From Oikopleura dioica (Eukaryota; Animalia; Chordata), in NCBI GenBank assembly GCA_907165135.1, contig OU015569.1, positions 10,106,001-10,170,000 on the forward strand: DNA of 64,000 bases, in the 5' to 3' direction. The notes beneath the pieces are model-generated. The model was given only the letters and a program-made list of their open reading frames with translations, had not been told where the DNA came from and made no database searches. Both the position numbers and the translations under genes were made by a program. Of the stretch, positions 2,800 to 47,870 are shown one piece after another (position 1 is the first letter of the stretch; each line of letters starts with the position of its first letter).

Positions 2800-3460
2800 C
2801 TCCTGTAAGTGCTCGAGTCAAGAGGCTGAAAATGGTTCAGTGAAAAGGCTGATAGAGGATGTCACTTGGCTGATCCGCAGCGTGGGGTAAGGCACCCTGC
2901 CGATCAGCACTTAGCGATAGGCCCCACATCGCTTCTCTCCAAATCGCTGTTTGCTCCTGGACAAGAAGGATTGGACATGCACGTTTCAATGAGCTAAATC
3001 ATGGCGGTAATAAGCGCGAAATTAGTTGGAATTATTTTCCGCGAAAATAAACCTTCTGTGCGCAGGGCACTTTCGCAATCTCGGCTAAATTATAATTTCA
3101 AATGTTCTCTCCTCTGACAATTTGCTCGGCCAAATTGACGCTCCTTTCTGTCGAATAAAATTGCGCTGAATCGTGCTGAAAAATATAGAAAATATTCGAT
3201 CAGCGGAAATTCAGCGCGAACGCAAATGAGTTTTAATGATGAACTTTTGAACTTTTCGAAGCTCGAGCTCGACTTTTCCGTCATGGCTTGCATCGGCTAC
3301 GCGGTATTTGGGATTATCTCTTTGGAAAGGGCGAAAGTTGCGGCGGGATGAGTAACTCTTTGCGGATAAGACGTGTTTCCAACAGTAGATCGCTAGTATT
3401 TTCTATATCATGCAGTATGAGAGTGTCACTCTTCGCCCGGTGTGCCCAAATGAATATTTG
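2800..3460 (-). CDS. Possible exons of an uncharacterised gene
   Basis: Open, protein-like stretch IYCWKHVLSAKSYSSRRNFRPFQRDNPKYRVADASHDGKVELELRKVQK (about 3243-3395), preceded by a plausible 37-nt GT-AG intron. No full model could be built. Confidence 0.25.
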
Positions 3461-4733
3461 ATTCACTCAATTCAGCGCCCAGACATGGATCAATGTCGCA
3501 TGTGTCAGATTTTTGCTGCTCTCCTCATCTAAACCGGACTTTTTCAAATACCCATTTAGACATAAATTTAAAACTAACGACTTCTCATTCAACAACGCGA
3601 AATTAAAAGGATCATGAAGAATGAATCTTATTGTTTATGGCGCTGTTCCCCAGCTGAAGCTTCAAATACAGCTTTTATAAATAATTAAAAGCAAATTAGA
3701 TTTTTATTGGCACGTGATTAATTGATGATAATAGGTGGATCTTCTTCTTTTAGCTCATTTGTCTTAATTTCTAATGAAAAAGAAAACTTGGATTTTCTTA
3801 GCAAAAAGTTCATCTCTTATTTATTAGCTTCTTTTTCTTAGATTTAATCTCTTATTAGTAGAATTTTTCTCTAGTAGTATTTTCTTTCTTTTTCTTTTTT
3901 GTTTCTCGTTGTTAGCATAATTTTATGTTTGCGCAAAGAGAGGCGCAATCTCTTTTTTTCTCCATTTTTTCAATTTTCCAGTCACTATAGAAACGAGGCG
4001 CGCCAAAAATCCAAATGGTCAAATTATAACTTCGTTATTGATTCGTATTCGATTATGTTTTCACTTTAACAGGAAGCAGGTCTTTCGTTCGCACATTGAA
4101 AAATTTCTCTTACTTATCAGAACTTATGCCGCATAAGTTATTAATTGTTTGACTCTGTGCTTGTAACAGTGCTGTTTCTTTCTCTTTCGAACTGTTTCTT
4201 CCCCCGTTTCTTCCTTTCACAGGCTCAAGAGTCTGTGCACTACAACTGTATTAATTATGCAGCCGATATTAAAAATGCATTTTCTCCTCTGTAATTATTC
4301 AAATTCTGTCCAAGTCACTCGCCGGAGAAAACACGCATCATGAGAGATGCAGAAAAAGACGATTACACGTGCAATTGTTCTAGGCTTAACCCTTTTTCCC
4401 ACATCTTTCTTTCAAAGATCAATTTCAATTTTTCTGATGACAGGGGTAACAAAAGGCATTTTATTTCAGCCCTGTTTTTGTGTTCTCTTTTCTTAGCTAT
4501 ATTCGCACTGAGTTAAATGCACGCTCATCCAGATTATCCTCCTTAGCGTTCGTCATCACACAGCGAAATATACAGTCTCATTATTCTCACATACAGTAAG
4601 AAAAAGACAAAGAGCATCCATATTCTGTAGATAATGGACTGTTGAACTATCTTCTATGGCATTTTCGTGGCGAGTTTAAATAAGTTTATTGAATATTTTC
4701 AGTGGAGAAAAATTTGTTTTATGAGGTCGAAAT

Positions 4734-43298: not shown

Positions 43299-43454
43299 AA
43301 AGAACGAAGACACTGCTTCATATTCACAGAAAGTGTAAATAGTGAAAAAATACATTTAGTTTGAATATATTCTACAGAAATTGTTCAAAAGTAGGCAGCA
43401 GTAAGGAAACGAAAATGAGATGAATGAATCACAGGAAGAAAATTGAGATTGGAA

Positions 43455-45437
43455 CTAAAGAGTGTCTGCGGCGTTGTTGGACGGAGCGAAGTATTCTGGG
43501 TAGCAACGGTACATTAAAATCGAGTCTGGCGGAAGGTACAGACTGATGGTATCCTTGAGTTTGTAGGAAGTAGCTCGGTGGTTGGGATCTTAAATCGGCT
43601 TATTATTTGGTCCATTGGTAGAAAATTGTTTTATCTAAATTAATATGAGTTGAAAGTTATATTCCGGTCGGAATCTTAGTTTAAAGCCGTTCCAAAAGAT
43701 CGACGCAGAGGTAAGATCCAACATCAGCCTTGAGACCAGCGTCAGCGAGAGTGAAATGCATATGTTGAGGCCGTCCGTCAGTTCGCTTCGAGACAGCGGC
43801 CACTGCGTATTCGCCTCCTTGCAGCGGTCTCTGCCACACTTCCATTCCAGGAATCAAGCCAAAACTATTCTCAACTTCGGATAGCATGTCACTTGTGGTG
43901 GTGTGGTTCAGAACGCGTCTTCCTTGAATTCCAAGAGGGTCTGTGTGTCGGATTAACGGATGATAAATCAGGAAAAAAGGTTCATTTGGGTTTTAGGGCT
44001 CTACTGTCCTGGCGGCGAGCAACGGTACATTATAATCGAGTCGGGATCGACGTAGAGCGTGATGATGTCTGTCATGTTCCACATCTCGAGAGGAACCGAC
44101 GAGTCAAACAAGTCGACGCAGGTATAGAGTCCGTTGCCGATGTCTTTGAGTCCAGCCTGAATCAGTGAGTTACAACGCTGCTGGCGCATTCGAAGCGTAC
44201 CTGTTTGAGAGTGAACTGGACCGAGCGTGGAGTTCCGTCAGTTCTAGCTGATACGACCCCAAGCGCGTACTGCTCGTTGACGATCTCTCGAACCCAAACA
44301 GAGTCGCCTTTTCCAAGCCCGTCCGTTTCATTCAAAACTCGACGACCCTGAATTCCCAAAGGATCTAACAAACGAATTCTCATTTGAAGAAAAGCTCTCG
44401 TCAAAAAAAGACATTCGAGGTTCAAAATACTCCTATTCAATTCAAAATAAGATTCAATCCGAAACTTGATTAACAGCGATGACGGCTGTGTTCTGATAAA
44501 CGTCTCGCATTTCTTTGGACATGGTCCTTAGATCAGTTGAGAGGAAGAGGGGTGCAGCGACGATGGACCAGATGCCGAACTGAACTTGAGCCTGGTTGAC
44601 AGTGAGCGCGTAGTTTCCGCCGATTAGCATGTCAGGGTCGTTCCACTTTCCAGGACCCGCAGCCTTAACCAGAACATCCGCGTGATCGCCCCACCACTGC
44701 GAGATATCAACGATATCATCCCAGTCGTCTTGAATATCGCCGTAATTTCGCCACACATTGCAAATTTCACCAAGCAAAGTGTAATTCACCTGTGGAGGAA
44801 GACCACCTACAAGAAAATCGTAAATAAAGCTATCGATTACAGGCATCAGAGTTTTATTAATTTTACCTTGATAGGCAGGCCAAGAGCAAGAATAAATAAT
44901 CGGTCTTCCAGTATTGTTAAGAGCGTGGCTCATCGCTGGATATCCAACTTTCTGCTGGTCATCGTCAGAGTAGCACCCGTCATACTTGAGCATATCAATT
45001 CCCCACTCAGCAAACATATCTGCATCTGTTTTCTCGTAGCCCATTGATCCTGGGAAGCCTCCACAAGTGTGGGTGCCCATGTCACCATAGATTCCGAGTT
45101 TCAAGCCCATGGAGTGAATCTGATCAGCCAACCATTTGATTCCATGCGGAAATCGAGCAGGATCGGCGGTGATTTTCCCATCCACTCGATCTCTCAAAGG
45201 CCAGCAATCATCAATATGGACGAGTTCGTATCCAACTCCGAGCCAACCGTCTTTTGCCAGTCGCTCGGCCTGTTCCATGAACAGTTTCTCACCGATACAG
45301 GTGTCAGGAAAGGTCTTGCAATCTGTGTTGCATCGGAATCTTTCCCAAGCGAGCCAGCCCATGGGAGGGGTTCTAGCGACGCCATTATTCATCGCCGTCG
45401 CCAGCGCAATAAAAGATCCAAAAATCTTCATCTTCAT
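43455..45437 (-). CDS. NAGA: Alpha-N-acetylgalactosaminidase (GH27) with two alternative C-terminal exon sets
   Basis: TPPMGWLAWERFRC, IDDCW, KLGIYGD.G..TC.G.PGS, LKYDGC, SCSWPAYQGGLPPQVNY, CNVWRN..DIQD.W, WNDPDML. C-terminal set A is 44364-44001 and set B is 43940-43455; both start DPLGIQGRRVLN. Confidence 0.93.
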
Positions 45438-45793: not shown

Positions 45794-47870
45794 TTAAATG
45801 TTAATAACTCGGGAAAGTTTTTGGACACGGTTGAGGAGTAGATCGCCTTTGCGGATAACGTCCTGGTATTGCTTGTTCTTGGCGTCGGGACGGTTCGTTT
45901 CGATAATTCCGTTCACTTGATTTTCGTTAAAAAAAACTATTGAAGGAAAACTGCTACCTTTGTCTATTTTGGCGTGGATTCTGCCGGCCGTAATGAAATT
46001 CGAAAGCTCTCGATCGAGAAATTTGACGCTCACTCCAAATGCTTTTGACATGTATTCGAGACTCATTGAGTTGTAAGCCTAAAATCCGGTTGAGCAAATT
46101 TTCCGGTTAAAAAATTAGTTGCACCTTTAGTTGTTGATTGTAAGCGAGAATGCGCATTTCTCTCGTGTAATATTTGTAATGCTCGTGGGTGAATCGGTTG
46201 TTTTTCAGGTCCTGTTCAACGAAGGCGAGTCCACGGAAAAACTGAAGATAGAGCTTTAGAGAAGGACTACATCTTAGTTCAAAACGAACCTTATCAAACT
46301 GACTATTGTAGAAGGCGAGCGCGTATTGCTTCGAAGCCTGGTCGGAGTGGAGCACTTCTAGGATTTCGGACCCGTTCAAAATATCGCTCCAGAGCTGGTG
46401 TCTAGGAAGGGCGACCATAGAAACAATTACAACGTAGCGGATAAACTCTTCGTATTCCATGAGCTCGTAGGAGGTAAATGTCGCCACTGCGCCGAGGAAG
46501 AGCTCAGCAGCTCGTCTTTGTAACAGTTTAGTAAGGGAATTTTGAAAATTTGCGGTTCAATCGTGCCACGATTCGCGTTCATGACTGACATAATTTCCGA
46601 ATCTGTCATTTAAATTTGCGCCGTTTTTTTATTCCAGCTCGAAGCCGTAAACGGTTTACTGACAAATGTGGAAGTTTTGTCATTCACAATCAGAATCGTG
46701 TTATTTCTGCTTACTTGAAATCTCTGATCGTAATGCAGTAGAGGCCTTCGTACACCTTTAGTCTGTTTCGTCGATCCCAGTCGCCACCTTCATCGATCAT
46801 TTTCTTTGCTTTTTCGACGTTTTCTGTAATCAGTTTTCTATCGTTGTAGAAAAGTCCAATTCGAAGAATCGCAAACGTCAAGTCCAGTCGAATACCAAGC
46901 GTGACGTTCTTCTCCAGGGCGAGAACTACAATTCAAAAAGAAAAAAAGACACTTGAAACATTTTTTACCTTTCTTGTAAAGAGCGAGAGCTTCTTCTTTA
47001 TCGCCGATTTGCGAGTAATACGTAGCCTTTTCGATCATTGCATCGCGGACGTCTGTGCTGACGTCGCCTAAAAGATCCATTGCAATCGTGTTTTTCAGCA
47101 AAAGAAAGTACCTTCGACTTGTCCAGCGGCTTCAATCTTTTCGTCGAGCTTCTTGAGCTGTTCCTTGTTTTTCGCCTTGAGATCGGATAAGATCTTCTTG
47201 TCAGGTGTTCTTTCCAGTTCGGCGCACATGTCCGCGTAGAAAGGCGCCATTTCTGAAAGTAATTTGAACATCCAAGAACATCCGATGCACCTTAAGGACT
47301 TGCACCTGCTCAGTCGACTATAAAGTAAGAATTTGCGGAGCAAGAAATCAAATCCAAGAAATCAAAATGACCAGCGTCTCAAAAATCATCAAAATGATTC
47401 GAACGCGGAAAGACTCGAAAAAGAAGCCGATCCTTCGAAAGCAAAAAACCACAAAAATAACGAGTTACGGCGGCACCATACGAAGACAGAGCGTCGAATG
47501 GCGCAAGAGCTTGACTTCAGCGTGTCAAGCTTTCGACGGCTTCGAAAGTTGCGACTCCGAGTACGGCTGGGAACTTCACAAAAGCGAGCTGAACAAAATC
47601 AGGGATGAGATTTCCGTACAAAAGAAAATCGTCGACGATTTACAAAGCGAAGCCGCACATTTGCGTTCACTGCGAAATCAACTGCGTAGCAGTTACTACT
47701 GTAACAATAAATCTATAAATTGAACATCTACCTTTGGCTTTCACTTCAGCCATGAGTTTCTCCTCGGTCTTTGCGCAGTTCGGATGCGATTTCAAGAAGA
47801 ATTTCCACTGAGCCACATCGAGATTTGGAATCTTCGGGATTTTCTCATCATCTGTTATTTTCGCCGGCAT
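45794..47870 (-). CDS. PSMD6: 26S proteasome non-ATPase regulatory subunit 6 (RPN7)
   Basis: [14 protein letters not shown]|EMAPFY; [17 protein letters not shown]; [10 protein letters not shown]; [11 protein letters not shown]; [20 protein letters not shown]; [37 protein letters not shown]. Confidence 0.96.
47367..47723 (+). CDS. Intronless 118-aa ORF (basic N-terminus, predicted coiled coil) antisense within PSMD6 intron 1
   Basis: ATG-initiated ORF fills most of the 47254-47730 intron, which is much longer than most other PSMD6 introns (about 40 nt). Confidence 0.4.
   Translation: MTSVSKIIKMIRTRKDSKKKPILRKQKTTKITSYGGTIRRQSVEWRKSLTSACQAFDGFESCDSEYGWELHKSELNKIRDEISVQKKIVDDLQSEAAHLRSLRNQLRSSYYCNNKSIN

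Follow-up and report, generated by a model that had tools for sequence, protein, structure and literature searches.

The GH27 glycosidases, the family that is mutated in Fabry and Schindler disease, carry a beta-sandwich behind their catalytic barrel, and we know of no clear role established for this domain 2. The NAGA locus of the larvacean Oikopleura dioica raises the question of whether a single catalytic barrel can be fitted with either of two such domains, two versions of which lie in tandem behind one barrel. We analysed the locus within a 64,000-nucleotide stretch of the genome (the window, to whose first letter all positions refer unless a contig is named). Our reading, to which we give a probability of about 0.72, is that of a single NAGA gene in which one exon 2 donor faces two competing phase-1 acceptors, and the barrel is accordingly completed by domain 2 version A or B; that either accessory domain can be joined to the one barrel is very probable. 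All searches used single-exon references or database protein identifiers, and exons were concatenated solely for the dN/dS calculations and the domain tree.

Architecture of the NAGA locus

The compact NAGA gene occupies positions 45437-43358 on the minus strand of chromosome XSR (O. dioica OKI2018_I69), and all features given below lie on this strand. Exon 1 (44867..45437), recognized by its open reading frame and its match to Pfam PF16499, opens with the start codon (MKMKIF...) and a signal peptide, encodes the first part of the barrel including LKYDGC and CSWPAY, and aligns to the mRNA contig L008. Intron 1 (44807..44866; GT-AG, 60 nt), which by chance is open in frame in the window, is spliced out in mRNA L008 and in RNA contig L012. 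Exon 2 (44465..44806) supplies the remaining barrel with the acid/base motif NYGDIQD, has 111-113 of its 113 residues identical in other lineages, and ends ...VIAVNQ plus one G (...AAT CAA G at 44465), i.e. in phase 1. Intron 1 varies in length: it spans about 600 nt in the lineage represented by contig L013 (L013 1901-2509) vs. 60 nt in the window.

Two terminal units follow exon 2, each opening with an AG|A acceptor in phase 1 and then DPLGIQGRRVLN, so that the start of both reads (D)PLGIQGRRVLN; the sequence thereby agrees with the preliminary description, which had reported two tandem versions of the C-terminal domain after VIAVNQ, with phase-1 acceptors at 44364 and 43940 and with an internal intron and a stop of their own. 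Set A, which reads (D)PLGIQGRRVLNETDG...FTLKQ|AGLKDIG...YRCSPPGQ* and contains the NETDGLGKGDSVWVR region, consists of A1 (44201..44364; (D)PLGIQGRRVLNETDGLGKGD...FTLKQ, with 48-54 of 54 residues identical between lineages), a phase-0 GT-AG intron directly after FTLKQ (44157..44200; absent from L012 and from its product P0128), and A2 (44001..44156; AGLKDIG...YRCSPPGQ), which codes to 44004, has its stop at 44003-44001 and is without a C-terminal tail. Between exon 2 and A1 lies an intron of 100 nt (44365..44464) with an in-frame TGA after the donor, which is retained in L012; the spacer from the A stop to the B1 acceptor (43941..44000; about 60 nt) contains a conserved block, TGATTTATCATCCGTTAATCCGA (43970-43948). 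Set B, which reads (D)PLGIQGRRVLNHTTTSD...YLCVDL-|-DPNHRATSYKLKDTISLY...PEYFAPSNNAADTL*, consists of B1 (43693..43940; (D)PLGIQGRRVLNHTTTSDMLSEVENSFGLIPG...YLCVDL(F), with an end as assembled of 43693/2 and a T-run one base short), a phase-1 GA...AG intron at a position unlike that of the set A intron (43589..43692; absent from L008, L012 and the six proteins described below), and B2 (43455..43588; (D)PNHRATSYKLKDTISLY...CYPEYFAPSNNAADTL), which codes to 43458 with a stop at 43457-43455. The 3' UTR (43358..43454) is drawn to the point at which L008, an mRNA of a sister lineage, is polyadenylated; the alignment of L008 extends down to 43358, and its poly(A) tail comes after an AATAAA.

Sets A and B are thus terminal two-exon units, each closed by a stop of its own and with no coding exon shared beyond it; they have coding lengths of 315 nt (105 residues) and 378 nt (126 residues), respectively. 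Their first exons share 47% identity (BLASTP, E=1e-16) and their second exons 57% (E=4e-10), and both A1 and B1 score above the cut-off of Pfam PF17450 (Melibiase_2_C); with similarity far above chance, the two sets are clearly paralogous. The 64.28-Mb genome (19 contigs) contains one GH27 catalytic region, and sets A and B are its only copies of the C-domain; a second NAGA gene behind set B was considered and ruled out, as the catalytic region is single genome-wide. The upstream neighbour on the minus strand (45794-46500), a multi-exon gene with small introns, ends at about 45794, leaving some 360 nt to the NAGA start codon. Over about 6 kb around NAGA, the window and the distant L013 lineage have their genes in colinear order.

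The 3' end of B1 differs by one base between assemblies. The T-run at 43697-43694 has four T in the window and five in L018 and L019, which are independent Illumina metagenome contigs of 95% identity; two more distant lineages read TTTTC or TTTTT at this place. With five T, or with TTTTC, B1 ends ...DLF and is followed by G|GA...AG (or GC...AG), a kind of non-canonical intron that is ordinary in O. dioica, whereas the four-T assembly needs an implausible AA-AG intron to keep set B in frame. The four-T run most likely represents a homopolymer error or a private allele or deletion. The earlier reading of this end as YLCVDLL gives way to DLF, and the AA-AG intron is dropped along with it. A frameshift that breaks set B in the window genome was also considered and ruled out; B2 is still open in frame.

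Identity of the enzyme and predicted folds of the two domains

The frame of exons 1-2 matches PF16499 (Melibiase_2) at E=8e-121, and among solved structures it comes closest to chicken NAGA (1KTB, E=1e-136) and human NAGA (3H53). The aspartates of LKYDGC and NYGDIQD fall in the catalytic columns of the 1KTB alignment, which we take to be those of the nucleophile D140 and the acid/base D201 of the chicken enzyme. The pocket segment of the window, SCSWPAYQGGLPP, is identical to that of chicken and human NAGA; the Ser/Ala pair of CSWPAY presumably provides the small loop residues that make room for the N-acetyl group, a role that reportedly goes back to the specificity-interconversion work behind PDB 3LX9, and GLA carries Glu/Leu at these positions. 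Judged by its sequence, the enzyme is a NAGA-type GH27 alpha-N-acetylgalactosaminidase.

Set A alone (database protein P0130 with its alignment) gave an AlphaFold2 model of eight strands with a pLDDT of 88.9, whose best Foldseek matches are domain 2 of 1KTB and of 3H53 (TM 0.70-0.74); the modelled fold of set A is therefore that of a complete NAGA domain 2 with all eight strands. The model of the B isoform (P0001; pLDDT 85) has the same eight strands; in it, strand 1 is followed by a loop of about 20 residues that is modelled with low confidence, and the last 10 residues are disordered. The two versions are thus predicted to differ mainly in the B-specific loop, in the ancestral tail that is lost in A, and at many surface positions. 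Within B1 (L013 ~3396-3640), an in-frame indel of 18 nt in the B-specific loop distinguishes L014 from L013, two contigs of 99.5% identity, consistent with a flexible loop that tolerates changes of length yet is coding.

Transcript evidence for the two sets

Direct joining of exon 2 to B1, with set A left out, is seen in six independent full-length transcripts, all from sister lineages; the proteins they encode (P0001, P0121, P0123, P0124, P0125 and P0126) each contain the exon 2-B1 and the B1-B2 junctions. The closest database protein, P0001 (429 aa), is encoded by L008, a 1461-nt polyadenylated Logan contig from run SRR28369226 that corresponds on the window to exon 1, exon 2, B1 and B2, without set A; the other five members of the cluster come from JGI metatranscriptomes and Logan. 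As the B-type transcripts are about 80% identical to the window DNA, their source must be sister cryptic lineages. Set B is clearly the major message.

Set A is met in RNA in a single contig. A search with the A1 frame matched genomic open reading frames (ORFs), the 95-aa product P0128 of JGI contig L012, and one genomic ORF of another larvacean. L012 lacks intron 1, the A intron and the B intron and for this reason must derive from RNA, and in it the internal intron of set A is spliced out; it keeps the A-B spacer as well as the exon 2-A1 intron, with its stop right after the donor. It could be a precursor of the B mRNA from which the nested intron has already been removed, or a precursor of either form. 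The exon 2-A1 junction was not found among the assembled transcripts and proteins of the collections searched (lengths 51-572 aa): a direct search for isoform A yielded genomic ORFs, the intron-retaining RNA contig and the public mini-gene only, and a metagenome scan with the set A protein P0128 returned two genomic contigs (L013 and L014) and no spliced ones. The preliminary description had one barrel joined to two accessory domains; for B this is borne out by the six transcripts, and for A the joining is predicted. The A form would accordingly be minor, conditional or unstable. One further contig, the ENA metagenome scaffold L009 (1-1600), in which an intron-less tRNA-synthetase gene is fused to set A and B1, was taken as chimeric; the O. 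dioica genome contains no counterpart of this tRNA-synthetase gene, and the contig is probably an artificial fusion for that reason.

Conservation, selection and history

We compared five lineages: the window, L018/L019 (95% identity), L010/L011 (88%), and L012/L008 and L013/L014 (about 73-80%). Both sets are colinear, gap-free and open in all five, the position of the set A stop codon is kept to within one codon, and the AG|A acceptor of A1 is in phase throughout. Nei-Gojobori estimates of dN/dS between lineages are 0.011-0.022 for the barrel (exons 1-2), 0.013-0.09 for set A and 0.064-0.134 for set B; for the window vs. L012/L013, dS is about 1.2-1.4 in sets A and B and 2.2 or saturated in the barrel, and synonymous change exceeds non-synonymous change in every pair (Fisher tests, p<1e-8). 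Within the window's own lineage, set A differs at three synonymous and no non-synonymous sites. The introns and the spacer have diverged far between the window and L013 (63% in the A intron, 47% in the spacer, 44% in the exon 2-A1 intron), and this divergence, set beside the low dN/dS, marks set A as protein-coding sequence under selection. Purifying selection on set A appears to be at least as strong as that on set B; the neutral drift of one set, raised in the preliminary description as the case against its own proposal, is not what set A displays.

The translation of set A depends on where its frame is entered. An ATG inside the exon 2-A1 intron, at which the public gene model starts, is confined to the lineages of the window, L018 and L010 and is replaced by an in-frame TGA or TAA in L012 and L013. 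Set A therefore has no conserved start of its own, and continuation from exon 2 is the sole open route of translation; the phase of exon 2 agrees with the conserved AG|A acceptor of A1.

Another larvacean (the species of P0004; contig L015, P0129) carries a single set, in which FTLKQ is followed by an intron just as it is in A, and the two-set arrangement is thus not general to larvaceans: conservation, as called for in the preliminary description, extends to all five O. dioica lineages and stops short of this relative. Because the single-set species has the FTLKQ intron, set A is seen to have preserved the old intron along with the short loop. In set B, the old DPNH motif and the tail are preserved, the old intron is gone, and a GA/GC-AG intron has arisen at another place. 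In the domain tree, clade A (support 100/100) and clade B (89/95) both lie inside the larvacean group, and placing A and B together as one clade carries no likelihood cost (p-AU 0.45); the alternative is likewise not rejected (p 0.07). The stem of clade A is long (1.68, vs. 0.42 for clade B) and its tips are very short, which points to rapid change followed by constraint. The duplication predates the divergence of the five O. dioica lineages that were sampled; that it is old had been proposed from the differing positions of the internal introns, and the presence of both sets in five lineages upholds this.

A model for the choice of domain 2

When the distal acceptor at B1 is used, set A is lost within an intron of about 525 nt and the major enzyme is made, a step that the transcripts show. 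The resulting B enzyme combines the barrel with domain 2 version B, whose loop is long and flexible and whose tail has 14 residues. Use of the proximal acceptor at A1 would join the same barrel to the compact domain 2 version A, without loop or tail; translation of this A-type mRNA would end in A2, and set B would be left as 3' UTR. We infer splicing to A1 from four features: the selection on set A, its fold, its phase, and the lack of an alternative start codon. The two enzymes may, as the preliminary description suggested, differ in oligomerisation, targeting or substrate. After the duplication, version A would have diverged fast and would have been nearly constant since. The two versions had been called mutually exclusive; the term holds at the level of the protein through the stop codon in A2, and at the RNA level the sets do not behave as classical cassette exons, the B mRNA skipping A altogether.

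Set A might instead be an unused relic of a partial tandem duplication, with set B alone making protein: the full-length transcripts are all of the B type, the exon 2-A1 junction did not turn up in the collections searched, and the sole RNA contig with A (L012) retains the upstream intron. A relic, however, should evolve neutrally, yet set A has a dN/dS of 0.013-0.09 at a dS of about 1.3; it has acquired no stop or frameshift in five lineages, with acceptor, phase and stop all conserved, and this next to intron and spacer flanks that are 44-63% diverged between the window and L013; and it models as a complete domain. We consider such a relic highly unlikely. Much the same constraint bears on a mainly regulatory, unproductive role, in which choice of A1 would yield a degraded message with a long 3' UTR and thereby tune the level of NAGA. 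In many animals, an exon junction downstream of the stop marks a message for decay; the B1-B2 junction would fall in just this place in an A mRNA, which counts against a stable isoform A, A-type messages are absent from the assemblies, and the exon 2-A1 intron is apparently removed slowly. A message made only to be degraded would not need constraint at the protein level, yet A has a 10- to 70-fold deficit of non-synonymous relative to synonymous change and the encoded domain is complete, so that we regard a mainly regulatory set A as improbable.

The public annotation embodies another possibility, namely that set A is an independent small gene with its own start, encoding a free-standing beta-sandwich protein. 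It lists set A as a separate gene of 112 aa (g16288; CAG5099141.1; Oidioi.mRNA.OKI2018_I69.XSR.g16288.t1.cds; window 44001-44381, minus strand), modelled from the ATG inside the NAGA intron (MRIRLL...) and with the A intron spliced. That model start sits within a transcribed intron of NAGA and gives way to an in-frame TGA or TAA in L012 and L013; the remaining methionines of set A lie near the C-terminal end (the shared one in WNM); the product is without a signal peptide; and A1 starts at the exact ancestral exon boundary in phase 1, as fits continuation from exon 2. A free-standing small gene is in our view scarcely credible, and the g16288 model is probably an annotation artefact. The locus thus corrects the public annotation at two points, the listing of set A as an orphan gene and a one-base problem in the assembled set B.

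Comparison with known systems

Substitution isoforms produced by tandem exon duplication are known from insect Dscam1, from 14-3-3 zeta and from human cases (PMC9741552, PMC9013439, PMC6071210). The NAGA locus resembles these in having adjacent homologous copies with the same acceptor phase, both under purifying selection and both facing one shared splice partner; it also has conserved intronic boxes that could pair, reminiscent of the docking and selector sites of mutually exclusive exons. It departs from them in that the duplicated unit is not the usual single internal cassette of equal length but a terminal exon pair with stops that encodes an entire domain (105 vs. 126 residues); in that exclusivity arises at the protein level from the stop codon of A2, and not from a frame or steric rule; and in that its copies, unlike the usual tandem exons, have their internal introns at different positions. 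With alternative last exons the locus shares one donor, a proximal or distal terminal unit and different C-termini; unlike these, it has no poly(A) signal after the proximal unit, and its termini are paralogous domains rather than unrelated tails. A search for AATAAA in the A-B spacer (43941-44000) found none, and with a spacer of only about 60 nt the A and B forms therefore probably share one 3' end. Taken together, the locus is probably a case of tandem-duplication alternative splicing that swaps a whole-domain terminal unit in a GH27 glycosidase, its A product being predicted.

Like vertebrate NAGA and GLA (1KTB, 3H53, 1R46), the O. dioica enzyme combines a (beta/alpha)8 barrel bearing the catalytic aspartates with an eight-strand beta-sandwich, and it has the Ser/Ala N-acetyl pocket of NAGA. 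The route to diversity differs: in vertebrates the whole gene was duplicated and the pocket of the barrel changed, whereas O. dioica has a single barrel and only domain 2 is duplicated. Our literature search found no description of the two-domain NAGA locus of O. dioica. Two versions of domain 2 alone, which share about 50% identity, have been kept in this chordate since before its cryptic species arose, and such long retention implies that the domain does something on which selection can act.

Splice signals and possible RNA control

In every lineage the sequence at the shared donor is CAAG|TTTCGG, and comparison of the cDNA L008 with the intron-retaining L012 shows that exactly one G is kept at the junction CAAG|ACCC; the junction is therefore truly non-canonical, TT-AG, or GT-NA if the G is placed on the acceptor side. 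That this donor cannot be read as GT-AG counts against the model. This shared-G junction (44465/44364 and 44465/43940) is conserved in five lineages and has cDNA support in a sister lineage.

Three blocks are conserved in the intronic sequence: a donor-adjacent box of 12 nt, TTTCGGATTGAA (44453..44464), which follows directly on the shared G and is invariant in five lineages; AATTCGTTT (44378-44370), just 5' of the A1 acceptor; and the 23 nt before B1. The core of the last, TTAATCCGA (43956-43948), is complementary to the donor-adjacent box; the two can form 9 bp, a pairing that in four lineages takes first or second place when all sites are ranked, whereas the box upstream of A1 can form 6 bp only. 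The pairing energy of -11 to -13 kcal/mol has only a small margin over the -9 to -11 of background sites. We found no covariation in the pairing of the donor box, all arms being invariant, and the B1-upstream box also resembles a branch site. Control of the A/B choice by RNA pairing is thus possible, and the 9-bp pairing, whose B1 box lies about 10-20 nt upstream of the acceptor, may bias that choice in one direction or the other, although we propose this more tentatively than the choice itself. A fuller version of the idea, in which competing RNA pairings at the TT-AG (shared-G) donor decide between the domains and the two enzymes differ in sorting (lysosome vs. secretion into the house or gut), in dimers or in kinetics, seems to us doubtful. 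If a regulated swap of domains does take place, the beta-sandwich of GH27, which is poorly understood, would gain a demonstrable function, and in any event the locus, at about 1.1 kb, offers a compact system in which to study splice-site choice at a non-canonical donor. The internal intron of set B likewise has a non-canonical donor, GA in L010, L018 and L019 and GC in L013; GA-AG introns are a known frequent class in O. dioica (PMC7072748).
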